This document shows positions 5,634-63,111 of a DNA stretch of 64,000 bases, in pieces. The position numbers and the translations under genes are program-made. How positions within the stretch are numbered: position 1 is the stretch's first letter; each line of letters begins with the position of its first letter. Below the pieces are notes generated by a model. That model was not told where the DNA came from. It was given only the letters and a program-made list of their open reading frames with translations, and did no database searches. The stretch covers positions 62,001 to 126,000 of the IMG/VR virus record IMGVR_UViG_2162886007_000107; one strand, 5' to 3'.

Positions 5634-5951
5634 ATGCGTTATGGAATGCTAGTACCGGTTAACTACGATCAACTAGCTGAGTTCCTTTTGCTTAAGGCAT
5701 CGGACATCCATGATCCCTTGGATCTCAGCTTTGAGAGTATCTATCGCTACCTCGATGAAACTGCAACTGCAATGCTGTGTGATCCAGAACACCGCACGGA
5801 TGAGATTGAAGATATCGAATTAACGGAACTCCTGCTCAAGGAACACTACTTCGGTTGTATTGAAGATGTAGTGGTTACCAAGATCCCAGGTATTGTCGTT
5901 CCGGTTGGTGACCATCTTTTGAAGCTTCCGCTAGTTTTAATCAAAATCTAA
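5634..5951 (+). CDS. hypothetical protein
   Basis: Contiguous operon ORF. Confidence 0.7.
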   Translation: MRYGMLVPVNYDQLAEFLLLKASDIHDPLDLSFESIYRYLDETATAMLCDPEHRTDEIEDIELTELLLKEHYFGCIEDVVVTKIPGIVVPVGDHLLKLPLVLIKI

Positions 5952-5961
5952 AGAGGTCACC

Positions 5962-6378
5962 ATGGCGATTCCTAACCCGAAGAAAGGGGACATCATCAGT
6001 TTCAGCTTTGTGCAGAATGGCTTGATTGGTAATGGCAAAGAACAAGTTAAAGTAGAGGGTGATGTCAACTATCTCATGGCGAAAGCAATCGACCCAGAGA
6101 TCGACGTCAAACACCAAGCCCTCTACAACTACTTTGCCAAAGACGTAGGTTATGTCGATGATCCATCGTCGTATGGTTACATCGGCATCATCAACCTGGA
6201 TGGTCGCGTAGAAATGATCGGCATCCCTTGGATTTTGGAGAGTACCTTCAAGTTCTCGGAATCCGAACGTGCTGTTATTGCGGTACCTCGTTGGCAGGAG
6301 AAACATCGTCCTGCTTTCGATACGTTCTTCCAAAGTCTCGGTCTTGATTGGACTATCAATACTTTCAAGAACGAGTAA
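5962..6378 (+). CDS. conserved phiKZ-like protein upstream of the DNA polymerase (gp49-like by position)
   Basis: GAGG RBS; synteny. Confidence 0.75.
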   Translation: MAIPNPKKGDIISFSFVQNGLIGNGKEQVKVEGDVNYLMAKAIDPEIDVKHQALYNYFAKDVGYVDDPSSYGYIGIINLDGRVEMIGIPWILESTFKFSESERAVIAVPRWQEKHRPAFDTFFQSLGLDWTINTFKNE

Positions 6379-6394
6379 TACCGGATATCTCTTT

Positions 6395-6445
6395 ACCAGG
6401 CCCTCTATTAAGTTAGGGGACCTGGTGAAGTTCTTTTATTTTTTG
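6395..6445 (+). terminator. intrinsic terminator
   Basis: ACCAGG...CCTGGT stem followed by TTTTATTTTTT. Confidence 0.6.
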
Positions 6446-10684: not shown

Positions 10685-12769
10685 ATGCCACTGAATACTG
10701 AAGACCAAGGCTCACAATTCGAAGGCTGGGACGGCAAGAACCCTCAGCAACCGGGCGGTGGCCAGTCGCAACAACCGAACGGCAACTTCAACGGTGGTCT
10801 GCTGGGCGCACTGTTCGGCATGAACTCCATGGTTGCAGACAACCGTAACCTGAAGATCGTTTCGGAAGTCTACGACGTCCTGAACGAGAAAATCTTCAAG
10901 GACATCAACACTTCCACTACCGACGACCGTCAACGCAAAATCGTACCGAAGGTTGAGCAGCTGACTCAGACCCTGTCCTCGCAATTGCCAGGTCTGGGCT
11001 TCTGGGCAGTGATCGACGGCACCATGTACGTGATGGCAGCGCTGTTCTCCAACAAGGACCTGAACATCGGTTCGGAAAGCATCACCGTCAACAACGCTCA
11101 CGGCAGCCAGCAACGCACCTCGATCCCGCTGACCCCGGCCGCTCAAATCAACGAGCGCTTCATCAACAACCTGAAAGAGCACTACCAGCAAGTCGCCGCT
11201 TCCAAAGGCGTCAGCAACCTGGTTCTGACCAACCTGGTCGTCCAGGACATGGAAATGCTCAATCACCCGGAATCCGGTGAAACCAAAGACTGGCCGTTCA
11301 ACATCGCCCAGTACCTGGCCACCCAGTGGGAAGAAGCACTCCTGGTCTACGCCGCCAAGCTGATCGTTCAGAAAGGCGGCGCGATTCCATCGCCATGGCT
11401 GGAACCGAACCACCCGTACGGCAAAGACAACGTCGCCGAAGCTCGTGTACAAGCGATCTCCGGCCGCGTTACTCGCGCCAAGACTCTGTCGCCTGCCAAC
11501 ATGGAAATCGTGGTTACCACCATGAATGCCCAGGGCAACACTCACACCTTCAACCAGGCAAGCACTCGTGAGATCGCTCGCGTAACTGCGGCTGTCAGCC
11601 TGGCCGGTGTACCGTGGGCCGACTACCAGCAACAAATGGCAATGCAGATGCAGTCCCAGGACCACATGGCAAACCTGCGTGCCTTCATGGGCCAGGCGTA
11701 CCAGGCTGGTTCCGTATGGCAAGGCACCTACCGTCCGCTGCGTCCGGAGATCACCATCGACACCGTTACTGCCGGCGAAATGCTGCGCAACAACGGCGGT
11801 ATCTTCCCGTGGTTCTACGGCCTGTACGCTCTGATGACTTCCAACAACCAGTTCGTCTGGGCGGAAGCACTGCGCAAGGCTCAGGTCGGTGGTCGTGGTT
11901 CGCTGGTCGGCCTCGAAACTCGTATCAAGATGGTGGCTCAAGAAATGCCGGGCTTCGCTCAGCTGATCGCGGCCAAGAACAATCTTCGCATCCCTCTGGA
12001 TGACAAGAACATCAACGATACCGACTTCGTGACCAACTGGATCCGCCAGAACGTTTCGCCGCACGCGATCTTCCGCGTGAACCTGATCCCGAACGGTCCG
12101 GATTCGCCAATCGTCAACTTCCTCCGTGAACTCTGCGGTACCAACTCGTACGAGGCCACCAAGGTAGTCGTCGCTCTGATCGACTCCATGACCAAGTTCA
12201 AGTTCTCCGAGATCATCAACGAGAACAAGGCTCGTGGCACCGGCTGGTACCCAGATCCACAGAAGCCGATCCTGATCAACACCAATACCCTGGTGGTGAA
12301 CGGTATCGCAACTTCGACCCTGGCTTCGCGCGATCACAAAGAGCGCGTGATCAACACCCAGGAAGTGGACGAAATGTTCATCTGCAACAGCAAGCCTGGC
12401 GACACCGCAGCTTCCACCGCGGCAATCGACAGCTACCTGGGCACTGTGTACGGTAACAACCCGAACGAAAACGCCAAAGAACGTTCGCAGAAACTGCGTG
12501 TGGAACAATCGTCTTCGCTGTTCGACGGTCGCAACCACATCAACAGCTTCGGTTCGTCGGCTGTATTCGATCCGGGCTTCATGGCTGCAATGGCTGGCGC
12601 AATGGACACCATCGGTGGCCTGAACGCAGCCAACAACCTGGGCTCGTTCCGCGTACACCGTCTGGCTTCTACTCCGGGCATCGGTCTGGCTACTCTGGTT
12701 GGCGCTGGTTCCAACGGCCTCAACCTGGGCGCAAACCAGGCGTTCAACATCACTGTACCGCTGATCTAA
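10685..12769 (+). CDS. chmA: chimallin, phage nuclear shell protein
   Basis: 694 aa; extreme high-expression codon bias; early promoter; immediately upstream of nvRNAP beta'-N as in phiKZ gp54-gp55; disordered N-terminus. Confidence 0.8.
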   Translation: MPLNTEDQGSQFEGWDGKNPQQPGGGQSQQPNGNFNGGLLGALFGMNSMVADNRNLKIVSEVYDVLNEKIFKDINTSTTDDRQRKIVPKVEQLTQTLSSQLPGLGFWAVIDGTMYVMAALFSNKDLNIGSESITVNNAHGSQQRTSIPLTPAAQINERFINNLKEHYQQVAASKGVSNLVLTNLVVQDMEMLNHPESGETKDWPFNIAQYLATQWEEALLVYAAKLIVQKGGAIPSPWLEPNHPYGKDNVAEARVQAISGRVTRAKTLSPANMEIVVTTMNAQGNTHTFNQASTREIARVTAAVSLAGVPWADYQQQMAMQMQSQDHMANLRAFMGQAYQAGSVWQGTYRPLRPEITIDTVTAGEMLRNNGGIFPWFYGLYALMTSNNQFVWAEALRKAQVGGRGSLVGLETRIKMVAQEMPGFAQLIAAKNNLRIPLDDKNINDTDFVTNWIRQNVSPHAIFRVNLIPNGPDSPIVNFLRELCGTNSYEATKVVVALIDSMTKFKFSEIINENKARGTGWYPDPQKPILINTNTLVVNGIATSTLASRDHKERVINTQEVDEMFICNSKPGDTAASTAAIDSYLGTVYGNNPNENAKERSQKLRVEQSSSLFDGRNHINSFGSSAVFDPGFMAAMAGAMDTIGGLNAANNLGSFRVHRLASTPGIGLATLVGAGSNGLNLGANQAFNITVPLI

Positions 12770-31879: not shown

Positions 31880-31936
31880 TACTACTCCCTAGCCCCGTTA
31901 AGGGCTAGGGAGTAGTATACTTTCTTTATTTTTTTT
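31880..31936. terminator. probable bidirectional terminator
   Basis: TACTACTCCCTAGCCC/GGGCTAGGGAGTAGTA followed by TTTATTTTTTT. Confidence 0.8.
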
Positions 31937-31937
31937 G

Positions 31938-33239
31938 CTATTTGATCGCAGTAGCCAGATCCAAAGTAACAATCTTGTTACCTGCAACGTGAGCAGCCTT
32001 CATCTTCTGCAACATGGCGTTGGTAGGCATACGGACTACTTCAGCACTAACCTGGTTCTTGTTGGAACCCAAACCGCTGCCACAGCACATGAAGCAGTAG
32101 TTGTCGTCAGGAGTGATGCAGAAGTTGGTGGTACGGATAACCAGCACCTTACCCATGTACTTATCAATAAGCTCATTGGTAATGAGAACAGACTCACCGC
32201 CGATGAGAGCAAAGCTACCAACCCAGTTACCTTTGGCAGTCTTGTCAATGGTGATAACCTCACCCCACTTAGTGCCGCAGTCGTCTTCAGCAACCACACG
32301 ACGACCTACAATCTTCAGGTAATCCTTAACCTTAGCACCGCCCTCACCAGTAGACATCGAACGGCTATACGAACCCACAACGGCCGTGTTGATGTAGTCG
32401 ACGATCTTCTCTGGATCCATACCGTCTTCCAGAGCCATCGGCAATGCCACCCAGCCAGTACCGTCAGCATTAGGCTCAACACCGAAAGCAATGAACATAC
32501 GTTTACGGGCGTTATCAATGAACTTCTTCTCAATGTAGAAGGAAGCACCTTCACTGTTGAGCTGTTCTTCCATGTCCATCTTGACCAGGATGTTTACCGC
32601 AGCAGTAAATGCAACCGGATCGTTAAGCTTCCCTTCTTTCTTGAGTGCGTCGAAGAGTTCCTTCTTCTTAGCCATGACCGTAGGGCTAGGCGTCAGACCT
32701 TGCAGGCCAGGCGTACGAATGTAGTAGGTACCCAAGCCTTCCAGGAAGTTAAGGTGCGTTGTAAACTTCATACAGGCGCTTACAGGGGCTTTACCTTCAG
32801 GTACTTCTTCCCCTTCAGCTGGATCATCTACCATGACTGAAGAAAGCAGACCTTTAACCAGATCTGCGGTGAACTCTTCATTCTTGAAAGGAACGATCGC
32901 ACCGAATACTTCCCAAAGAAGAACCACGTTACAGAGGATCAATCCAAAGACTGTCTCCTGTGGCACTCCTTTCAGCATCGGGTGGAAGTCACCAGGGATA
33001 TCTACTGGATCATCCATTACAAAGAACGGTTCTTTTACATCACCGTCCAGAGTAACTTGTTGTTCATCAATGATGGCTTGGAACTTACCCTTCTCGACAA
33101 ACACAGCCCCAGGAACCTTCTTGAACTGCTCGCTTGAGTCAGGTCCTTCAAACTGGATGGAAATAATCGATTGGATTGCCGCTTTCTCTGCATACCAGCG
33201 GTTAGCAAACCAGATCTTTAGAAAGTCAACCTTTTTCAT
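31938..33239 (-). CDS. virion RNA polymerase beta' C-terminal subunit (phiKZ gp80-like)
   Basis: GSYSRSMSTGEGG, EDDCGT, RTTNFC..CFMCCG, MLQKMKAAH. Confidence 0.85.
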   Translation of the reverse strand: MKKVDFLKIWFANRWYAEKAAIQSIISIQFEGPDSSEQFKKVPGAVFVEKGKFQAIIDEQQVTLDGDVKEPFFVMDDPVDIPGDFHPMLKGVPQETVFGLILCNVVLLWEVFGAIVPFKNEEFTADLVKGLLSSVMVDDPAEGEEVPEGKAPVSACMKFTTHLNFLEGLGTYYIRTPGLQGLTPSPTVMAKKKELFDALKKEGKLNDPVAFTAAVNILVKMDMEEQLNSEGASFYIEKKFIDNARKRMFIAFGVEPNADGTGWVALPMALEDGMDPEKIVDYINTAVVGSYSRSMSTGEGGAKVKDYLKIVGRRVVAEDDCGTKWGEVITIDKTAKGNWVGSFALIGGESVLITNELIDKYMGKVLVIRTTNFCITPDDNYCFMCCGSGLGSNKNQVSAEVVRMPTNAMLQKMKAAHVAGNKIVTLDLATAIK

Positions 33240-34198
33240 TTGTCTAGTACCAGTTTGTTAACAAACGCCTCCGCCTTAATCAATACCACTGGATCGTCAA
33301 TCCAGTTGTTGATGTTGACATTGAGACGTTCTTTGATGTGTGGGGAGTTGACGTCACTAATCAAGTAGAAGCCTGCCAGCTCCTTTACATAGGCAAGGAC
33401 ATTGTCTCCAGTGAGGTTCTGAGTAAGCGGTGCTAGTTCGGCTTGGAAGAAAGCCAGGAAGCTTTCCAGAGAGCCTCCCAGTTGACCGTTAAGACGAATG
33501 TGTTGCCAAGCTAACGTACCATCCAACAAATCCTTGTTGGCCTTTATACGAGCAATCAGAGAGTCCGGGAGTGCATCAGACAGATTCTCTCCGGACAAGT
33601 CATTCAGAACGGTTTGAAGGGTGATCTCACTAACGTCATCCAAGATGTCGTAATAGACTTCAACATCAAAATCTTCACCGTAGTACTTTTGCAAGCACAT
33701 GATATAACGCTCGGCTGGAGGAATGTCTCGCGATTCCAGAATACCAGCCATACCAATGAGATCTTGATAGCCTTGCACTTCGAACAAGAAGTGTCCTATC
33801 TTACATAAGGCTGGGAGTGTTTCTGCTTGTACCATCTCTTCGTTAATTGAGAATCCCAGCTGTCGTAGCAGGTTCAAAACACTCTCTAGCAAGATCTCGT
33901 AAACACGGAGTTTCTTCCCGGAGATTTCTTGCATCTCGTCGATCAACAGGTTGCTGATCTGATAAGGAACGAGGGTGCTAGGCCTTGCAATGACCGAGTC
34001 TTCATCCAGAGGCTGCTCCTCGTTATTAACGGGATTGCTGGAATCTGTAAGCAGAATTAAATTAAACGCATCAACCAATACTTTGGCTTGTACTTCAGGG
34101 ATAGTCTTCTTGAATTCTCTCCAAGGTCCCCCAATTACCGTTAGGGCAAGATCTTCATCTTGCTCCATCAAAATCGCTTCATCGGCTTGAATCAACAT
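33236..34198 (-). CDS. hypothetical protein
   Basis: Likely start MLIQADE at 34198 with GGAGAAAGGG RBS; ATGA overlap with the vRNAP subunit. Confidence 0.75.
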   Translation of the reverse strand: MLIQADEAILMEQDEDLALTVIGGPWREFKKTIPEVQAKVLVDAFNLILLTDSSNPVNNEEQPLDEDSVIARPSTLVPYQISNLLIDEMQEISGKKLRVYEILLESVLNLLRQLGFSINEEMVQAETLPALCKIGHFLFEVQGYQDLIGMAGILESRDIPPAERYIMCLQKYYGEDFDVEVYYDILDDVSEITLQTVLNDLSGENLSDALPDSLIARIKANKDLLDGTLAWQHIRLNGQLGGSLESFLAFFQAELAPLTQNLTGDNVLAYVKELAGFYLISDVNSPHIKERLNVNINNWIDDPVVLIKAEAFVNKLVLDK

Positions 34199-34240
34199 AA
34201 ACCCTTTCTCCACCCGGACTAAACAAGGAACATAGCATTC

Positions 34241-35035
34241 ATGGCTAACAAACAAACCAGCATGAGAGCCAAAAAGCAACAAAAGGCCAAGACTCGCCAA
34301 AAAGAAGTGCTCCGGAAAAAGAACCCGGCCACTCAAAAGGTTAAGCCAACTGATGCGCAACTCAAGTACGAGATCAGCAAACGCGGTCTGGTAGCCACGG
34401 CCAAGAAGTATCGTCGTGCCCTGGATAAGGGCGATACCAGCAACGGCCCTAGCCATAACGATATCTCGCAGGGTTTTATTACCTTCATTGATATCATGAC
34501 GCCGATCCACTCCGCCTTGGAAATCGCCGACATCCTGGTTAAAGAAGGCAAGATCACCTTCTCTGATGAAGAGCGGGCACAGATCAATGCTTTCGACGAA
34601 CAAATCGTTAAGGCCAATGAAGACATCAACGCCATCGGCGAGTTCATGAAAGAGGGCCTGGAGTTCCACGACTTCGCCGACCTGTTCGTGCACTACGCTG
34701 AACTGTCCGCCAACATGGCCACCGATACCGCTCCTCTGCTGTTCCGTCAGATCCTGAAGCCTTACGGCGTGATGATCAGCGAATACGCCCGTGAACACAA
34801 GATCACTGGTGAGGTCGATATGGCCTACGCAATGCGCATGCACGAACAGCGCATGAAAACTATCTACCCTCTCTACCGTACCATCCTGGACGACAGTCCG
34901 TTGGACGTTCCGGAAGAAGGCGATGATGCCGGCATTCCTCCAGAGTTCATCCCTGCTGGGGAGATCTCCGATGCCGAACTCGTCGGTGATGTTGTAGTCG
35001 ATGAACTCCGTGACGTCTCGCAAGGTGACAAGTAA
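34241..35035 (+). CDS. hypothetical protein (basic N-terminus, acidic C-terminus)
   Basis: AAGGA RBS; codon bias. Confidence 0.8.
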   Translation: MANKQTSMRAKKQQKAKTRQKEVLRKKNPATQKVKPTDAQLKYEISKRGLVATAKKYRRALDKGDTSNGPSHNDISQGFITFIDIMTPIHSALEIADILVKEGKITFSDEERAQINAFDEQIVKANEDINAIGEFMKEGLEFHDFADLFVHYAELSANMATDTAPLLFRQILKPYGVMISEYAREHKITGEVDMAYAMRMHEQRMKTIYPLYRTILDDSPLDVPEEGDDAGIPPEFIPAGEISDAELVGDVVVDELRDVSQGDK

Positions 35036-36738
35036 TGTCCGAAGAAAACAACAGCCCTGAACAGCAACCGTCTTCTGAAAAGAAGCCGACGGCTAAGTAC
35101 AGTGAAAAGCACACCCCTGAAAACACTTCGATGAAGCATCGCCAGGATCCACGGGATTTCATTATCCGGGACCTGACCGAGAAAGAAATCGAAGACGGTT
35201 ACATGACCATCTTCATGGGTAACACCAAAGCCAGTCGCGAACATGCTCATCAGCTGATTCGTCCGTACATGGACTTGATCGTTATCCGTGATCTGCATCA
35301 GCGCGGTAAAGTCGAAGACGACATCCTGCGTAAAGCAGAAGATGACTGGGCTCGTTTCGTTGAGACCAACTATCCAGAACACACCCTGGAAGAAATCACC
35401 ACTCGTGCTCAGCACCTCATGGAGTTCCACAACGAAATCCTGGATGAGCTGCGTCAGCGCAGTAACGCCATTCGTGAACCGGGCATTACCAACGTCTCTG
35501 ACCGCGGCGGTGTGATCACTGGTGATGTGGTCGGTCGTACTCCAGGTCTCGGTACCAAGGGTCTGAAACCTTCGGCCATCATGCGTCGTCGTTCTGCTCG
35601 TGCGGAAGATGGCAAGATGGCTTTCGACATCATGCTGCGTAACTCCTTCATTAAGAGTACCATTGCTCGTCCTGGTAAAGGTCAGCTCGGTATTCTGATC
35701 GATGAGATCAAGGATGAGATCAAGGGTTACGTCCGCAAGGTCAACAACAACATGGCTGTACTGGCACGTATTGCAGTAGGTCGTGTGTTGTGGCGTCACT
35801 ACATCAAGTTGCTGACCAGCACCAGTGTGAACGACATTGCTGACTACAACCAGTTGGCTCGTATCGTTCGCTGGTCTGACATTGATGCCATTGCTGTGGG
35901 TATCCTCAATGCCTACACCAACAAGGGTGTGAACCTGCATCTGGTGTGTGGCAACCCAACCTGCGACTGGAATCGCATGGGTCTGGCGGATGTAGAGAAA
36001 TTGCTGCATATCCGTCCTGACTACGATACCGATGAAGAAGCGGCGATCTTCGCTAACCTCTTCAACGAGAAGGCGACCTACACCTCCGAAGAAACCTTGG
36101 CTCTGATCCGTGAAACCAAATACGGTCTCGAAGACAAGCGCGTGTACAACGAAGACAACAGCATCTGCCTGGAACTGGAATCTCCTTCCATGGCCGACGC
36201 CTTTGCCTCCTTGGACTTCTTCCTCGGTCGTGTTAACCCACTCATCCAGGGTATCCGTGAACGGAACATCTCGATGGAAGAGTTCGAAGAGAAGCGCAAC
36301 ATGCTCTTCATCGAACTGGGTGCCACTGAGTACATGCACTGGGTAAGCGCCTTTATCTCGGTTGCAGCTCCTGGCAGTGACGAGAAGGATGTTGTCCTGC
36401 GTCGTAGCGATGTCGAGGATCAGGCTGACTTCAACGAAGGTGTAATGGATATCATCCAGGACAGCCAGTACCTTCAAGAGAACCTGACTCAAGGTATCCT
36501 GCGTAAGACTCCGTTCATGTCGAAGACTTTCGCTGGTGTGCAGAACTACTGCTGCCCGAAATGCAAGATGAACCAGGATATCTTCGAGGACCCTGAAGGA
36601 CTCAAACAGCGTAAGTTGGGTTACACTCCAATCGATCCGCTCATGAGTTTTTTTATCCTTATCCAGTTGATTCAAGTTCGTCAGGCAACCGAAGCGCTAG
36701 AGGCAAGGGCAAAAGCCCTCTCCGCATTGGAAAACTGA
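35035..36738 (+). CDS. putative tail/baseplate assembly chaperone (T4 gp26 / lambda gpG-like), with a probable -1 frameshift extension
   Basis: CxxxxC and CPKC metal sites; ...PIDPLMSFF encoded over a T-TTT-TTT slippery site. Confidence 0.6.
   Translation: MSEENNSPEQQPSSEKKPTAKYSEKHTPENTSMKHRQDPRDFIIRDLTEKEIEDGYMTIFMGNTKASREHAHQLIRPYMDLIVIRDLHQRGKVEDDILRKAEDDWARFVETNYPEHTLEEITTRAQHLMEFHNEILDELRQRSNAIREPGITNVSDRGGVITGDVVGRTPGLGTKGLKPSAIMRRRSARAEDGKMAFDIMLRNSFIKSTIARPGKGQLGILIDEIKDEIKGYVRKVNNNMAVLARIAVGRVLWRHYIKLLTSTSVNDIADYNQLARIVRWSDIDAIAVGILNAYTNKGVNLHLVCGNPTCDWNRMGLADVEKLLHIRPDYDTDEEAAIFANLFNEKATYTSEETLALIRETKYGLEDKRVYNEDNSICLELESPSMADAFASLDFFLGRVNPLIQGIRERNISMEEFEEKRNMLFIELGATEYMHWVSAFISVAAPGSDEKDVVLRRSDVEDQADFNEGVMDIIQDSQYLQENLTQGILRKTPFMSKTFAGVQNYCCPKCKMNQDIFEDPEGLKQRKLGYTPIDPLMSFFILIQLIQVRQATEALEARAKALSALEN
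36648..36654 (+). other. putative -1 ribosomal frameshift slippery heptamer T-TTT-TTT
   Basis: In-frame XXXYYYZ; the -1 frame is open without a stop through to 37196. Confidence 0.65.
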
Positions 36739-37196
36739 GTCGATACAACAAGGGTGCGTTTAGTGTTGTCCATGAGAACATTACGCGTAACTTGCTGGGT
36801 AAGTCTACTAAGGAGATGCTTCCTGAGACTTTGTATTTCAATGAGCGCATGCTCTATGACTTCAACATGGAGTACTACACTCCTAAGAATCAGGATCCAT
36901 TCTCCTCGGTAGGTTGGTTCAAGGAAGAGAACGAATACTTCCACCCGCTGTCTTTGAGTATGTCAGGTGAAACATACGGCTATCACAAGCTGCATGAGAT
37001 CATGCCTATCAAAGACTTCTTTGAAATGCCAAACGTTATGGTAGAGGAAATCCTTGACTCTGTATCGCGTGGTTTGAAGAAGCGGGAAGAAGCAGAGGCC
37101 GCTAAAGCCAAAGCCAAGGAAGACAAGAACCCAGACAATATCGAAAAACAGCTTGGAGCAGAGCTTCGTAAAGCTGGTATCAAACTGGATAGGTAA
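36654..37196 (+). CDS. -1 frame extension (gpT/gp51-like) of the 35035 protein
   Basis: Open from the slippery site; no well-spaced RBS/start of its own; MPIKDFFEMP..ILD motif. Confidence 0.6.
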   Translation, partial: YPYPVDSSSSGNRSARGKGKSPLRIGKLSRYNKGAFSVVHENITRNLLGKSTKEMLPETLYFNERMLYDFNMEYYTPKNQDPFSSVGWFKEENEYFHPLSLSMSGETYGYHKLHEIMPIKDFFEMPNVMVEEILDSVSRGLKKREEAEAAKAKAKEDKNPDNIEKQLGAELRKAGIKLDR

Positions 37197-37204
37197 GTGT
37201 CTAC

Positions 37205-37238
37205 TCCCTGCCTCCGCAAGGGGGTGGGGGGTATTTTA
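37205..37238 (+). terminator. hairpin terminator
   Basis: CTCCCTGCCTCC-GCAA-GGGGGTGGGGGG followed by TATTTT. Confidence 0.5.
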
Positions 37239-37291
37239 TGCTGACAGCAAAAGCATTATAACGGTTAACCGGTAAATAAGAGAGATTTCTC

Positions 37292-38134
37292 ATGGCAGAC
37301 GAAACTAAACCAAGCGGTATCGCCGCTCTGCGTCAAGCGGAAGAGCAGATCATCACTCAGCCACCAGCTGAGCAACCAGCCCCAATCGAAGGCGAGCTGA
37401 TCATCCTGGACAAAAGCCTCCTGGAAACCGATGCCAAGGACACTCCTGCTCCTGAAGCTCCCAGTGAAGCCGCTCCAACTGTTCCTGTGGCCGAGCAATC
37501 GAGCCAGGAGTATCAACCCCCGGTCACTGAAGAACTGCAGCCACAAGAGCCTGCACAACAAGCTCCTGCTCCAACCGCCCCGGAAGCTCCTGCCGCCGCA
37601 TCTGAAGAAGCTGCTGGCTATGATGTCACCCCTGCGCTGGTTGAGTCGGGTGAAATGGTTGCGGCTAATGGTAGCGCGACTTCTGGCGTGATGCTCTCGC
37701 GTATCGCCAAGCACATGTCTCACCTGACTGGTAAGAAGGGCTTCGGTAGCAACAAAGAGCGTTGGGAAGAACAAGCCTCGTTCATCGAGTGTGTCGGTCG
37801 CTCCCTGGGTCTGCCTTATGACGACTACGTCATGGTTACCAACGAGCTGATCCAACAGATCCGTGACAACCTGAAGCTGTTCACCTCCGGTGATGCTTAC
37901 CGCTTCATGCACGACCTGACCACCAAGTACCCTGAAAACAAACCGGTCAAGTACCCGAAAGAAAGTGCTGATCGCTATCAGGCGTACATGTCGTTCCTGA
38001 CTACCATTGCCCGGAACTACACCACTCGTCATCGTCTGCGTACCAGCACTGACGTCGGTTTCGCAACCAAAGACATGAACATGGTCGGCAAGCAAAACGT
38101 CACCAAGTTCTTCACTCAACTCACTGCACAATAA
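37292..38134 (+). CDS. hypothetical protein with a P/A/E/Q-rich N-terminus
   Basis: ORF with strong codon bias. Confidence 0.8.
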   Translation: MADETKPSGIAALRQAEEQIITQPPAEQPAPIEGELIILDKSLLETDAKDTPAPEAPSEAAPTVPVAEQSSQEYQPPVTEELQPQEPAQQAPAPTAPEAPAAASEEAAGYDVTPALVESGEMVAANGSATSGVMLSRIAKHMSHLTGKKGFGSNKERWEEQASFIECVGRSLGLPYDDYVMVTNELIQQIRDNLKLFTSGDAYRFMHDLTTKYPENKPVKYPKESADRYQAYMSFLTTIARNYTTRHRLRTSTDVGFATKDMNMVGKQNVTKFFTQLTAQ

Positions 38135-38146
38135 TTGGCGGGCATC

Positions 38147-39235
38147 ATGATTGACGTAGCAGAATTTGAACCCGATGCCGCCACGTTTGAGCTTCCTGAC
38201 GTTCCTCAAGTAAACGTCATGATGGATGCTCTCGATGACTCCATCGAACAGATCGACCTGGTAGAAGGTAGCGAAGCTATCTCCTTCACCAAGGCTCAGC
38301 AGTACGCTCAAGGCGTTCTGTACTCCAACGGCATCATTCCTCTGCGCGCCATGTGCGGTATGGAAGAAGGCGGCGTGTTCAGTTCCATCGGTAACGGCAT
38401 TGGTGCTGTATGGAGCTGGATCAAAGGTATCTTCACCTCCATCTGGAATTTCTTCTTCTCCCGTGACAACAAGGAAGAAGCTGACAAGACCAAGGCTGAA
38501 GCTGATGCCAACAGCAAAACTGCTGGTGACGCTGCTAACGGTAACCAGTCGGATGAAGACGCCAAGAAACAAGCCAGCAAGATGGCAGGCATTGCATCTG
38601 AAGGCGGTGACGAGGCTACTGCCAAAGCTCTGAAAGAAGCCAAGACTCCAAAAGAGATCAAGGCTGCAATCAAGGCTGCCCTTCCGAAGATCGCCAAGCT
38701 CAATGCCAAAGGCAAGCAGAAGATCCAGAACTCCATCAAGCTGGCTGTTCAAGCTAAGCTGGGGTTCAAGAAGGTCGTCAACGATGACAGCAACAAAAAG
38801 TACACTGCAGCCCAAGACAAGGTTGCTGGTACTGACCATCCTGTTGCTCACATCATGGTGGAGCTGGAAGCCTGTATCGACAAGATTCTGATCAAAGACA
38901 ATACCTTCATCCCGATTCTGGAAAAAGCCATGGATTGCGATACGGTGCAGAAGGTCATGGCCTTCAACACCACCATGAAGGCAAACGTCGATGCGATGAA
39001 GACTCTCGGTGACGACTTCGATCAGCGTAAAGGCAAGGTCAAGACTATTCTCGACACTACTGAGAAGAAGTTGAAGGCAGCCAAAGATGCCAAGAACAAA
39101 GCCGAACTCAAGAAGGAAGTGGATACCATCCGCGTTCTGATGAACCAGGCTGTCAAAGTATCGAAGTTGATCCAGATCAGCAACACTCGTCTGCGTACTG
39201 TGTCCGACGACTTGAACGCCATGTTCGGTCTGTAA
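38147..39235 (+). CDS. putative processed head protein (paralog family)
   Basis: Acidic propeptide, GMEE site, then VWSWIKGIFTSIWNFF motif and a basic body. Confidence 0.7.
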   Translation: MIDVAEFEPDAATFELPDVPQVNVMMDALDDSIEQIDLVEGSEAISFTKAQQYAQGVLYSNGIIPLRAMCGMEEGGVFSSIGNGIGAVWSWIKGIFTSIWNFFFSRDNKEEADKTKAEADANSKTAGDAANGNQSDEDAKKQASKMAGIASEGGDEATAKALKEAKTPKEIKAAIKAALPKIAKLNAKGKQKIQNSIKLAVQAKLGFKKVVNDDSNKKYTAAQDKVAGTDHPVAHIMVELEACIDKILIKDNTFIPILEKAMDCDTVQKVMAFNTTMKANVDAMKTLGDDFDQRKGKVKTILDTTEKKLKAAKDAKNKAELKKEVDTIRVLMNQAVKVSKLIQISNTRLRTVSDDLNAMFGL

Positions 39236-55527: not shown

Positions 55528-55577
55528 CTACCAGGGGTTCCTTCGGGAGCCCCTGGTGGGTTTCCTTTATTTTTTTG
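55528..55577 (+). terminator. intrinsic terminator
   Basis: ACCAGGGG...TTCG loop...CCCCTGGT followed by TTTATTTTTTT. Confidence 0.8.
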
Positions 55578-55633
55578 CATTTTGTCTGGAATGCTATAGG
55601 TTTCGACCACTATATTTCTAACGGGTAAGCACT

Positions 55634-61773: not shown

Positions 61774-63111
61774 ATGGAATCACCACGCTCGTTACAGAAC
61801 CTTATCGAGTTCGTGAATCATGTTGAGGCAACTCAACGCAACGAACGTCTTTTCAACATGGAGGCTACGGCAATCACCCCGGAAGCCCAGATACCTCTTA
61901 TCATCCCCAATGCATTTGCAAGGATGTGTAGTTTTGTAACAGGGCGTAGTGACGACATGCGACTGCGTGCACAAATCCAGCCGGGCGTGTACAGCAAACA
62001 GATCCAACCCTTTCGCGACGACCTCATGATTGAGATTGTAGAGCGTCAGGGTTTCGGTCAAGTCATGAAGAAGTATCGGGCCATTCCAATGAGTGGCAGC
62101 GACCCTGAACTGGAAGGTAACCACACTGCATTGGCTAACCTCATGGCCAATGACCACTTGAACATGGTTAGTGTGGACTTTCAGTTGTTTGAAATGGGCT
62201 TTGCCAAATTCCGTAACGCCCCAGCAAGTGACATCTTCTTGATGGCTAAGCTGGAAGACGTATTCCACGACAAGCTGTCTGAATTCGGCGAGACTCTAAA
62301 CCTTACCGGACCAGACTCTTGGAAAGGAGTTGATGTAGAGCAACCTGTAGACAACGACCGCATATTTAAGCAGGTGGTAATCCCGGCTAGTGTGCGTCTT
62401 ATTGATTTGGGGGACTACCTTCAGAACGATGAGAAGTTTGGTGTGTACAACACTGGATTGGGGTTGTATTACAGGAAGGGCTTGTGGCGCATCTATCCCC
62501 TCTACAGGGACGGACGTTATGAAAAGGCACGTAGGGTACTAAACATCTACAGACTGCCTGAGAACGCGTTTCCAACGCTTCACAACACATGGATTGAAGA
62601 CGAGAAGAGTATCACTATCTTCTCCACGGGTAAAAGTACCAACAACGACGATACGGACATCGATCGTCAGACTCATGGCGTTGGTCAGCGGGTAATTGCT
62701 GCAGATGCTGTGATGGGTGAAACTGGGCGCTACTACAACAAGGGTGTGGCGGTTACTACTCGTGAGGATAGTCTCTCTGAGTTCAAAACAGTTAACCGTA
62801 AGTCTGGGGAAGAATGGATTCCATTGGACCCTACTCCAACCAGTAACCTTGGTAAGCGTTTAACCAAGAATGCGGAGAACGATACCTCGGTTACTACAGT
62901 GCCTTGGCATAACTCCGATGCACTGAAGATCGATCCTGGGATGCCCCTGCGTTTCTTCTACATGCGTGGTGACATTCTTGTTTACAAGGAGGGTAGTGTG
63001 GCCGGTCTGTTGAGTAAGTACCAAATGGATACTGAAAGTGTTCAACCAGTATTCAGGGAACACTCGGTTATTACCTTGACCATCAACAGTCAGGAGTACG
63101 TCGTCAAGTAA
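61774..63111 (+). CDS. virion structural protein, probably baseplate hub (phiKZ gp101-like)
   Basis: GVYNTGLGLYY and W..SDALKIDPGMP segments; synteny. Confidence 0.6.
   Translation: MESPRSLQNLIEFVNHVEATQRNERLFNMEATAITPEAQIPLIIPNAFARMCSFVTGRSDDMRLRAQIQPGVYSKQIQPFRDDLMIEIVERQGFGQVMKKYRAIPMSGSDPELEGNHTALANLMANDHLNMVSVDFQLFEMGFAKFRNAPASDIFLMAKLEDVFHDKLSEFGETLNLTGPDSWKGVDVEQPVDNDRIFKQVVIPASVRLIDLGDYLQNDEKFGVYNTGLGLYYRKGLWRIYPLYRDGRYEKARRVLNIYRLPENAFPTLHNTWIEDEKSITIFSTGKSTNNDDTDIDRQTHGVGQRVIAADAVMGETGRYYNKGVAVTTREDSLSEFKTVNRKSGEEWIPLDPTPTSNLGKRLTKNAENDTSVTTVPWHNSDALKIDPGMPLRFFYMRGDILVYKEGSVAGLLSKYQMDTESVQPVFREHSVITLTINSQEYVVK

Follow-up and report, generated by a model that had tools for sequence, protein, structure and literature searches.

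A conserved slippery site and a probable -1 frameshift in a core gene of phiKZ-like jumbo phages

We analysed a window of 64,000 nucleotides (positions 62,001 to 126,000 of the metagenomic viral contig IMGVR_UViG_2162886007_000107 from IMG/VR), in which a 567-aa open reading frame (ORF) is followed by a small ORF in its -1 frame. A megablast of the region against the phage collection found no match, so the phage itself is not in that collection. The gene lies between a virion RNA-polymerase subunit gene and the DNA polymerase gene; a virion structural protein and unknowns make up the remaining neighbours, both in the window and in all relatives. The features of the locus are collected in Table 1.

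Table 1. Features of the locus (window positions, all on the + strand)
Position	Feature	Details
34241..35035	Upstream gene, 264 aa	phrog_28183, at the position of phiKZ gp78; its stop overlaps the ATG of the 567-aa ORF (TGATG), which suggests translational coupling
35035..36738	0-frame ORF, 567 aa	Ortholog of phiKZ gp77, EL gp47, RisingSun gp53 and Miami gp009 (family phrog_4585); four invariant Cys (C305, C310, C507, C510) and an invariant FF at residues 539-540
36648..36654	Slippery heptamer T TTT TTT (X XXY YYZ)	0-frame codons AG[T] TTT TTT within ATG AGT TTT TTT ATC; the first T is the third base of the AGT codon
36654..37196	-1-frame extension, 180 codons plus stop (37194-37196)	Begins YPYPVD, continues with a Gly/Ser/Arg-rich linker and a KSPL motif, then a conserved domain of about 110 aa (phrog_19747) and a charged helical tail; includes the nominal ORF 36792-37196; the -1 frame is open from 36615
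36654..36738	Dual-coding overlap of the 0-frame tail (28 codons, predicted helix) and the -1 frame	The region of lowest synonymous variation in the whole gene starts here
36706..36719	Hairpin AGGGC-AAAA-GCCCT	52 nt downstream of the heptamer; not conserved outside the closest relatives; probably a by-product of the dual coding rather than a stimulator
36711..36722	K-S-P-L in the -1 frame	Consensus RSPL; S and L invariant in set A2, P in 12 of 14 sequences; upstream of every annotated start of the small ORF in the relatives; the same bases encode E-A-L-S in the 0 frame
36792..36818	Nominal start codons of the small ORF	TTG at 36792, 46 codons after the run and the first ATG/GTG/TTG of the -1 frame; in-frame ATG at 36816, abutted without spacer by AAGGAG (36810-36815); neither start is conserved among relatives
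37202..37233	Terminator-like hairpin (14 pairs, then T-rich)	Just after the -1-frame stop; no + strand terminator-like site lies between 36738 and 37196, so both frames sit on one transcript

A preliminary description, made from the sequence alone, had proposed that this heptamer marks a programmed -1 ribosomal frameshift producing proteins of 567 and about 720 aa, and that the products are a hidden tail-chaperone G/GT pair resembling T4 gp26/gp51; it also pointed out the hairpin. Everything it stated about the sequence itself was confirmed when we re-examined the letters, with predicted products of 567 aa and 540 + 180 = 720 aa. T7/A7 runs are depleted in the window, with 5 matches at 4 places against 14.7 +/- 4.7 in shuffles. 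The other three lie outside any convincing gene, so this run is the only one inside a convincing gene.

To test whether the site is more than chance, we asked if orthologs carry a slippery site or instead an independent conserved start for the second ORF. All 38 distinct related genomes examined have a -1 slippery site at the aligned codon and a -1 ORF of 153-215 aa, one of which is cut by a contig end. The heptamer is U UUU UUU in 23 genomes, U UUU UUC in 10, U UUU UUA in 1, G GGU UUU in 1, G GUU UUU in 2 and C UUU UUU in 1. That is, it is canonical in 35 of 38 genomes and near-canonical in 3, where only the A-site tRNA re-pairs perfectly. The genomes include phiKZ (gp77/gp76.4), EL (gp47/48), RisingSun, Miami, SPN3US-like phages, RSL2, Xoo-sp14, a Bacillus phage and metagenomic phages, and the hosts range from Pseudomonas, Vibrio, Aeromonas, Erwinia, Klebsiella, Salmonella, Ralstonia and Xanthomonas to Bacillus. 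This conservation in 38 genomes is the decisive evidence that the site is more than chance. No conserved start codon was found in the second ORF. Annotated starts are scattered over 28-87 codons after the run, all downstream of the conserved RSPL motif, and no conserved Shine-Dalgarno sequence accompanies them.

We next analysed conservation in both frames. A tblastn search with the -1-frame translation aligned from its first residue in EL, RisingSun, FishSpeaker and Miami; in each case the match was in the -1 frame relative to the upstream ORF and overlapped its end. In an alignment of 24 genomes, the codon before FF ends in T in 23 of 24 although it encodes S, A, N, T or G, the first Phe codon is always TTT, and the second may be TTT or TTC, which is exactly the X XXY YYZ constraint. 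In the -1 frame, Y3, P4 and P6 are invariant, while the 0-frame residues on the same bases vary (L/H/Q; I/V/T/S/A/H), but only among codons that keep Pro in the -1 frame. The eight 10-codon windows with the highest synonymous-codon identity in the whole gene all lie on or next to the slip site (0.79 against a gene mean of 0.48). In the close relatives the -1 frame is closed by a stop only 4-17 codons upstream of the run. No in-frame fusion was seen in the 38 loci, among the 20 word-search relatives, or among the 150 listed representatives of 220 HMM hits. As a negative control we inspected T4 gene 26, whose product also ends in FF and which is followed by gene 25 in its -1 frame; the FF is encoded as TTC TTT, which is not slippery, and a slip into gene 25 was rejected.

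In contrast, we found no conserved stimulatory element. RNAalifold predicted no consensus pairs downstream of the heptamer in 24 sequences, single-sequence folds were not more stable than shuffles (z-scores from -1.9 to +1.4), and no conserved upstream Shine-Dalgarno-like element was seen. The hairpin of the preliminary description is rejected as a conserved stimulator. Such elements are frequent at -1 frameshift sites but not obligatory; efficiency may be low or depend on an unknown stimulator.

We interpret the locus as a programmed -1 ribosomal frameshift, with a probability of roughly 0.85. In this view, ribosomes translating the 567-aa ORF reach codons 539-540 (UUU UUU, preceded by a U), and a fraction of them slip back one base with both Phe-tRNAs re-pairing perfectly, then continue in the -1 frame for 180 codons. 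Two proteins sharing residues 1-540 would result, and the predicted trans-frame junction reads ...PLMSFF-YPYPVD... in this phage and ...LSTFF-YFGGLE... in phiKZ. The short form would end in a helix of about 28 residues, whereas the long form would replace that helix with a Pro-containing hinge (YPxP), a flexible Gly/Ser/Arg-rich linker, the RSPL motif and the domain of about 110 aa with its charged helical tail. The sequence comparisons themselves establish the site, its phase, the open -1 frame, purifying selection on both frames and conservation throughout phiKZ-like jumbo phages and their relatives. That the trans-frame protein is made, that the slip is ribosomal, how efficient it is and what the proteins do, including any requirement in baseplate hub assembly and absence from the virion, are inferences from these data.

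The same 720-aa fusion could also arise by transcriptional slippage, if the phage or host RNA polymerase stuttered on the T run and added one U to a fraction of mRNAs. Most genomes have a run of 7 or 8 T, phiKZ-like phages use their own unusual multisubunit RNA polymerases, whose slippage behaviour is not known to us, and the missing RNA structure would not matter under this model. However, the phase is conserved while run length is not: there are T6 in 11 genomes, T5 in 2 and only T4 in one genome (L038), where the site is the canonical tandem-slip heptamer G GGU UUU, and the Bacillus phage has U UUU UUA. The constraint on the base before the first Phe codon and the freedom of the last base fit tRNA re-pairing rather than a homopolymer-length requirement, and bacterial RNA-polymerase slippage usually needs runs of about 9. 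We consider this explanation unlikely.

Two separate genes, with the small ORF translated on its own from a non-canonical start or by termination-reinitiation, are less likely still. All GenBank records annotate the locus this way, FF is a conserved protein motif in its own right, and an ATG with an adjacent AAGGAG exists, but the scattered starts, the conservation of YPxP and RSPL upstream of all of them and inside the overlap, the suppressed synonymous variation and the wobble T before FF speak against it. A homopolymer error hiding a single 720-aa ORF (T8), or a decaying gene, could be suspected because the window is metagenomic and homopolymers are error-prone. The comparative data effectively refute this, since the same split occurs in 38 genomes from many laboratories and technologies, including the phiKZ and EL records, runs of 4 to 8 T all give the same frame relationship, no fused protein was found in the sets given above, and both frames are under purifying selection.

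We then asked what the protein might be. Pfam gave no hit above its cut-off for either part, tail-chaperone families included, and the PHROG families of both parts are of unknown function. T4 gp26 and gp51, both listed as hub assembly chaperones (PMC3004832), match PF12322 (T4_baseplate), but neither the window protein nor phiKZ gp77 did, and only 1 in 90 remote members hit this profile (E 0.0022). Alignment of the jumbo-phage profiles to T4 gp51/gp26 profiles with hhalign gave only a local CPxC match (probability 16-56%), and the extension profile against gp51 gave nothing. Foldseek against BFVD, with a model of medium quality (pLDDT 71.6), returned a 'Baseplate hub assembly protein, bacteriophage T4-like' (E 5e-4, probability 1.0, target TM 0.44), several weaker hits of the same family including the ACP17 'hub assembly chaperone' (E 0.03), and gp26 of Aeromonas phage 25 (E 1.8, not significant), and the ESM Atlas linked the model to clusters carrying PF12322 (TM 0.44, feature score 0.90). 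Profile searches of both parts against the PDB and a Foldseek PDB search with the large model found nothing, and no solved gp26 or gp51 structure turned up in the PDB searches. With the extension model, which is poor (pLDDT 60.6), Foldseek against BFVD found only an ortholog and the Atlas gave only weak leads. Several GenBank annotators call orthologs 'putative baseplate hub assembly protein', while the label 'ZipA-like cell division protein' has no support from Pfam. phiKZ gp77 is not marked structural in the phiKZ record and is not mentioned in the phiKZ virion atlas.

From this we infer that the shared body is most likely a non-virion assembly factor distantly related in predicted fold to the T4 gp26/gp51 chaperones, and that the extra domain of the long form would, by analogy with lambda G/GT, tether it to a second partner; we rate the hub-chaperone function itself as about as likely as not. 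The interpretation in the preliminary description is only partly supported. Its frameshift joining the two ORFs has strong comparative support and its resemblance to T4 gp26/gp51 has weak to moderate support from fold searches and no significant support from sequence profiles, but a G/GT tail-chaperone pair does not hold as family membership.

The lambda G/GT-type tail assembly chaperone frameshift (also P2 E/E+E'), reportedly described by Xu, Hendrix and Duda (2004), likewise involves a -1 slip on an X XXY YYZ heptamer near the 3' end of a phage morphogenesis-type gene, giving a short and a C-terminally extended protein with a shared N-terminal body. In both cases the arrangement is conserved although the protein sequences diverge, and the protein is apparently absent from the virion. 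However, we found no sequence or fold relationship to tail-chaperone families, the gene is not between tube and tape-measure genes, the products (567/720 aa rather than about 140/280 aa) are about four times (short form) and 2.5 times (long form) larger, and the heptamer is a U run rather than G GGA AAG. In E. coli dnaX (tau/gamma), a -1 slip on the homopolymeric heptamer A AAA AAG gives two functional forms of one protein in a fixed ratio, but the slipped ribosome stops almost at once and makes the shorter form, driven by an upstream Shine-Dalgarno-like element and a downstream hairpin. Here no conserved stimulator was found and the slipped product is the longer one. T4 gp26/gp51 have a weak to moderate fold-level similarity to the predicted model and share with the jumbo-phage proteins four conserved cysteines arranged as two separated pairs, and gp26 also shows CPxC, then a spacer, then FF near the C terminus. 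T4 gp51 is not in the virion. The T4 proteins are 208-249 aa against 490-660 aa here, and T4 gene 26 makes its two products, gp26 and 26', by internal initiation, so that they share the C terminus rather than the N terminus.

A literature search found no description of a frameshift in phiKZ-like phages and nothing on phiKZ gp77 or gp76.4. These phages are intensively studied as models and as therapy candidates, yet in every record inspected the gene is annotated as two unrelated hypothetical proteins, with the small ORF starting at a different, arbitrary codon in each. Recognizing the frameshift predicts a new protein of about 720 aa in each of these phages, corrects the annotation of a family-wide gene and offers a simple genetic handle, as synonymous changes in the heptamer would separate the roles of the short and long forms. 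For recoding biology, it offers a U-run site conserved across very different hosts with no detectable RNA stimulator. A broader and more tentative reading, which we cannot exclude but hold to be somewhat less likely than not, is that an ancient, obligatory -1 ribosomal frameshift is a universal feature of this core gene in nucleus-forming jumbo phages and their relatives, across Gram-negative and Gram-positive hosts, and that the gene is the counterpart of the T4 gp26/gp51 hub chaperones. If so, making a short and a long chaperone by frameshifting would extend from lambda-like tails to giant contractile tails, as a principle of contractile-tail and baseplate assembly that arose independently of lambda G/GT and works here without a conserved RNA stimulator.

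Finally, we suspected that BFVD hits of 686-687 aa (phiEaH2, Myoviridae sp.) might be natural in-frame fusions. This was rejected, as remote members match positions 289-687 of the 693-position phrog_8054 profile, so the extra length is N-terminal, and the SPN3US-like JN03 ortholog has its own U UUU UUC site and -1 ORF.

We first re-examined the sequence itself. As the preliminary description had stated, the 567-aa ORF reads CTC ATG AGT TTT TTT ATC CTT ATC CAG around a run of seven T, the first of which is the third base of AGT, so that the heptamer T TTT TTT lies in the X XXY YYZ phase. The -1 frame is open from shortly upstream of this run, and a slip after Phe540 would give a product of 540 + 180 = 720 aa. 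The possible start codons and the downstream hairpin noted in the preliminary description were likewise found in the sequence. Thus, the original observation was confirmed. T7 runs are rare in this window, with 4 places against an expectation of about 15. The other three are intergenic and share the motif TTTATTTTTTTGC, which may be a repeated phage promoter or terminator element. Upstream, the stop codon of a 264-aa gene at the position of phiKZ gp78 overlaps the ATG of the 567-aa ORF, suggesting translational coupling of the two genes.

Coordinates of the features at and around the putative frameshift site (window positions unless another locus is named)
Feature	Position	Strand
567-aa ORF (0 frame)	35035-36738	+
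Overlap of the upstream stop codon with the ATG of the 567-aa ORF (TGATG)	35033-35037	
Stop codon closing the -1 frame upstream	36612-36614	
Run of seven T (T TTT TTT)	36648-36654	
Hairpin AGGGC-AAAA-GCCCT	36706-36719	
First ATG/GTG/TTG of the -1 frame (TTG)	36792	
ATG directly abutted by AAGGAG	36816	
Stop codon of the -1 frame	37194-37196	
Terminator-like hairpin	37202-37233	
Other T7/T8 runs, intergenic, sharing TTTATTTTTTT(T)GC(A)T	2543-2566, 31920-31944, 55561-55584	
Antisense ORFs of 528-600 aa	34873-36675, 33236-35023, 37265-38851	-
phiKZ, stem after the heptamer	L030 (phiKZ locus): 11836-11958	-
T4 genes 26 and 25	L031 (T4 locus): 5760-6429	-

The window is part of the 236-kb IMG/VR contig UViG_2162886007_000107 and has no near-identical relative among deposited phages. 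The 567-aa protein belongs to phrog_4585 and the -1 ORF to phrog_19747, both families of unknown function. Using tblastn, we found orthologs at 26-38% identity in Pseudomonas phage EL (gp47), Erwinia RisingSun (gp53), Shewanella FishSpeaker, Klebsiella Miami (gp009), and Vibrio, Aeromonas and other jumbo phages. The neighbourhood is always the same: a virion RNA-polymerase beta/beta' subunit gene and a roughly 300-aa virion protein gene on the other strand are followed by a small gene, the large gene and a small ORF and, in most of the deposited genomes checked, by the DNA polymerase gene a few genes further on. By this synteny, and by a later tblastn hit, the phiKZ ortholog is gp77, and the later-added ORF PHIKZ076.4 lies downstream of it.

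To test whether the frameshift signal is conserved, we compared the -1-frame translation starting at the T run with related phages. It aligned from its first residue in EL, RisingSun, FishSpeaker, Miami and others, in each case in the -1 frame relative to the large ORF and overlapping its end by about 70 nt. In total, 38 distinct genomes were inspected: 24 in a first round, 8 remote metagenomic members found with a profile search of 1.84 billion representative proteins, and 6 further deposited phages (SPN3US-like JN03, Ea35-70, RSL2, Xoo-sp14, Halocynthia phage JM-2012 and Bacillus phage AgentSmith). Every one has a -1 slippery site at the aligned codon, namely U UUU UUU in 23 genomes, U UUU UUC in 10, U UUU UUA in 1, G GGU UUU in 1, G GUU UUU in 2 and C UUU UUU in 1. 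The -1 ORF continues for 153-215 codons (one is cut by a contig end), while the 0 frame stops after 10-53 codons.

We then analysed selection on the two frames. In the alignment of the 24 first-round genomes, the codon before Phe-Phe encodes S, A, N, T, G or H, yet it ends in T in 23 of 24; all Ser are AGT, all Ala GCT and all Asn AAT. The first Phe codon is always TTT, whereas the second is TTT or TTC. Synonymous-codon identity is 0.79 in the 10-codon window at the site against 0.48 for the gene, and the eight highest windows of the whole gene all lie there. In the -1 frame, Tyr3, Pro4 and Pro6 are invariant among 14 diverse sequences, and in the motif RSPL at residues 22-25, S and L are invariant. 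The 0-frame residues encoded by the same bases vary (L/H/Q; I/V/T/S/A/H; Q/R), but only among codons that keep Pro in the -1 frame. That is, both frames are under selection from the slip site onward.

These data bear on the alternatives to ribosomal slippage. The T run varies from 4 to 8 bases, while the phase and the tandem-slip pattern are kept; this is what tRNA re-pairing requires, but not what polymerase stuttering on a homopolymer requires. All annotated starts of the small ORF in GenBank lie downstream of RSPL and fall anywhere from 28 to 87 codons after the run. Independent initiation therefore cannot explain the conservation. A natural in-frame fusion was not seen in any of the 38 loci. 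The 20 relatives found by word search are all 555-606 aa long, and the 150 listed representatives (of 220 HMM hits) all end at most about 50 residues after the profile end, while the 686-aa relatives are longer at the N terminus. That neither a simple fusion nor a clean separation turned up suggests that both the short and the long form are needed.

Next, we looked for stimulatory elements. No conserved RNA secondary structure follows the heptamer, and folding energies of the 85 nt downstream are ordinary, with z-scores from -1.9 to +1.4. The hairpin proposed in the preliminary description lies 52 nt downstream, occurs only in the closest relatives and coincides with the dual-coded GKSPL/EALS stretch. 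No conserved upstream Shine-Dalgarno-like element is visible. The strong nucleotide conservation just after the heptamer (ACCCnnACCCAGTTGA) and at GAAGCCCTCTCC is explained by the double coding. In phiKZ alone, a stem of about 8-10 bp (GGCCUCGA... pairing with ...UCUUGAGGCC) starts about 5-7 nt after the heptamer; it is not conserved in other genera and the overall fold z-score is 0.05, but it could be a lineage-specific stimulator. A terminator-like hairpin follows the -1 stop and none lies inside the region, so both frames are on one mRNA.

To study what the protein is, we used structure prediction. The AlphaFold model of the 567-aa protein is of medium quality (pLDDT 71.6) and ends in a long helix (535-566) that begins just upstream of the slip site. 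The predicted short form therefore carries this helix, while the long form would replace it, after residue 540, with a hinge, a disordered linker and a small helical/beta domain that is poorly modelled (pLDDT 60.6). No solved structure resembles the protein. When the medium-quality model was compared with predicted viral structures, the hits after the jumbo-phage orthologs were 'Baseplate hub assembly protein, bacteriophage T4-like' (E 5e-4), 'Baseplate hub assembly chaperone' (ACP17) and, not significantly (E 1.8), 'Gp26 base plate hub subunit'. The ESM Atlas independently pointed to clusters carrying PF12322. T4 gp26 and gp51 are paralogs that both match PF12322, and both are listed as hub assembly chaperones, with gp51 absent from the particle (PMC3004832). 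In addition, both families have four conserved cysteines in two separated pairs, and some GenBank annotators already call orthologs 'putative baseplate hub assembly protein'. However, sequence profiles do not confirm the link: Pfam finds nothing in the window protein and one weak hit among 90 remote members, and hhalign finds only the CPxC motif. We consider the hub-chaperone assignment about as likely as not. GenBank calls two other orthologs, RisingSun gp53 and ZPAH34 gp061, 'putative ZipA-like cell division protein', for which Pfam gives no support in the window protein. phiKZ gp77 is not flagged as structural in the phiKZ record and is not mentioned in the 2026 phiKZ virion atlas, which fits a non-virion assembly factor but does not prove one.

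Taken at the sequence level, our analysis establishes a canonical slippery heptamer in phase, an open -1 frame with conserved protein sequence from the site onward, dual-frame purifying selection, one transcript and family-wide conservation. The slip itself, the existence of the long protein and the functions of both forms are inferred. In this view, with Phe-tRNAs on UUU UUU(Y), the ribosome would shift one base toward the 5' end in a fraction of passages and go on in the -1 frame, making a long form beside the short form. Without a conserved stimulator, the efficiency may be only a few per cent, which is also the order reported for G/GT. By analogy with lambda G/GT, the common body would bind one assembly partner and the extra domain of the long form a second one.

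The proposed mechanism is the familiar -1 programmed frameshift, and the nearest functional parallel is the G/GT (or P2 E/E+E') tail-chaperone frameshift. However, this gene does not fit that family in homology, position or size. The interpretation in the preliminary description, a probable programmed -1 frameshift that makes a hidden G/GT tail-chaperone pair resembling T4 gp26/gp51, was partly supported, with strong comparative evidence for the frameshift itself. We found no paper that describes a frameshift in phiKZ-like phages, and no inspected record annotates one; the site is ordinary in mechanism, but unrecognised, ancient and present in a much-studied phage family. The protein may be a distant relative of T4 gp26/gp51, but those proteins have no slippery site, and T4 gene 26 makes its second product by internal initiation. 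T4 gene 25 starts in the -1 frame of gene 26, overlapping its stop (TAATG); however, the FF near the end of gp26 is encoded TTC TTT, so nothing suggests a slip there. In precomputed annotation, gp51 homologs (P0171-P0262, the T4 gp51 family) carry a second, newer Pfam domain (PF28602) after PF12322. Finally, very long ORFs run antisense to the real genes in the window. They look like shadow ORFs caused by codon bias rather than genes, because the sense-strand ORFs are the ones with homologs.
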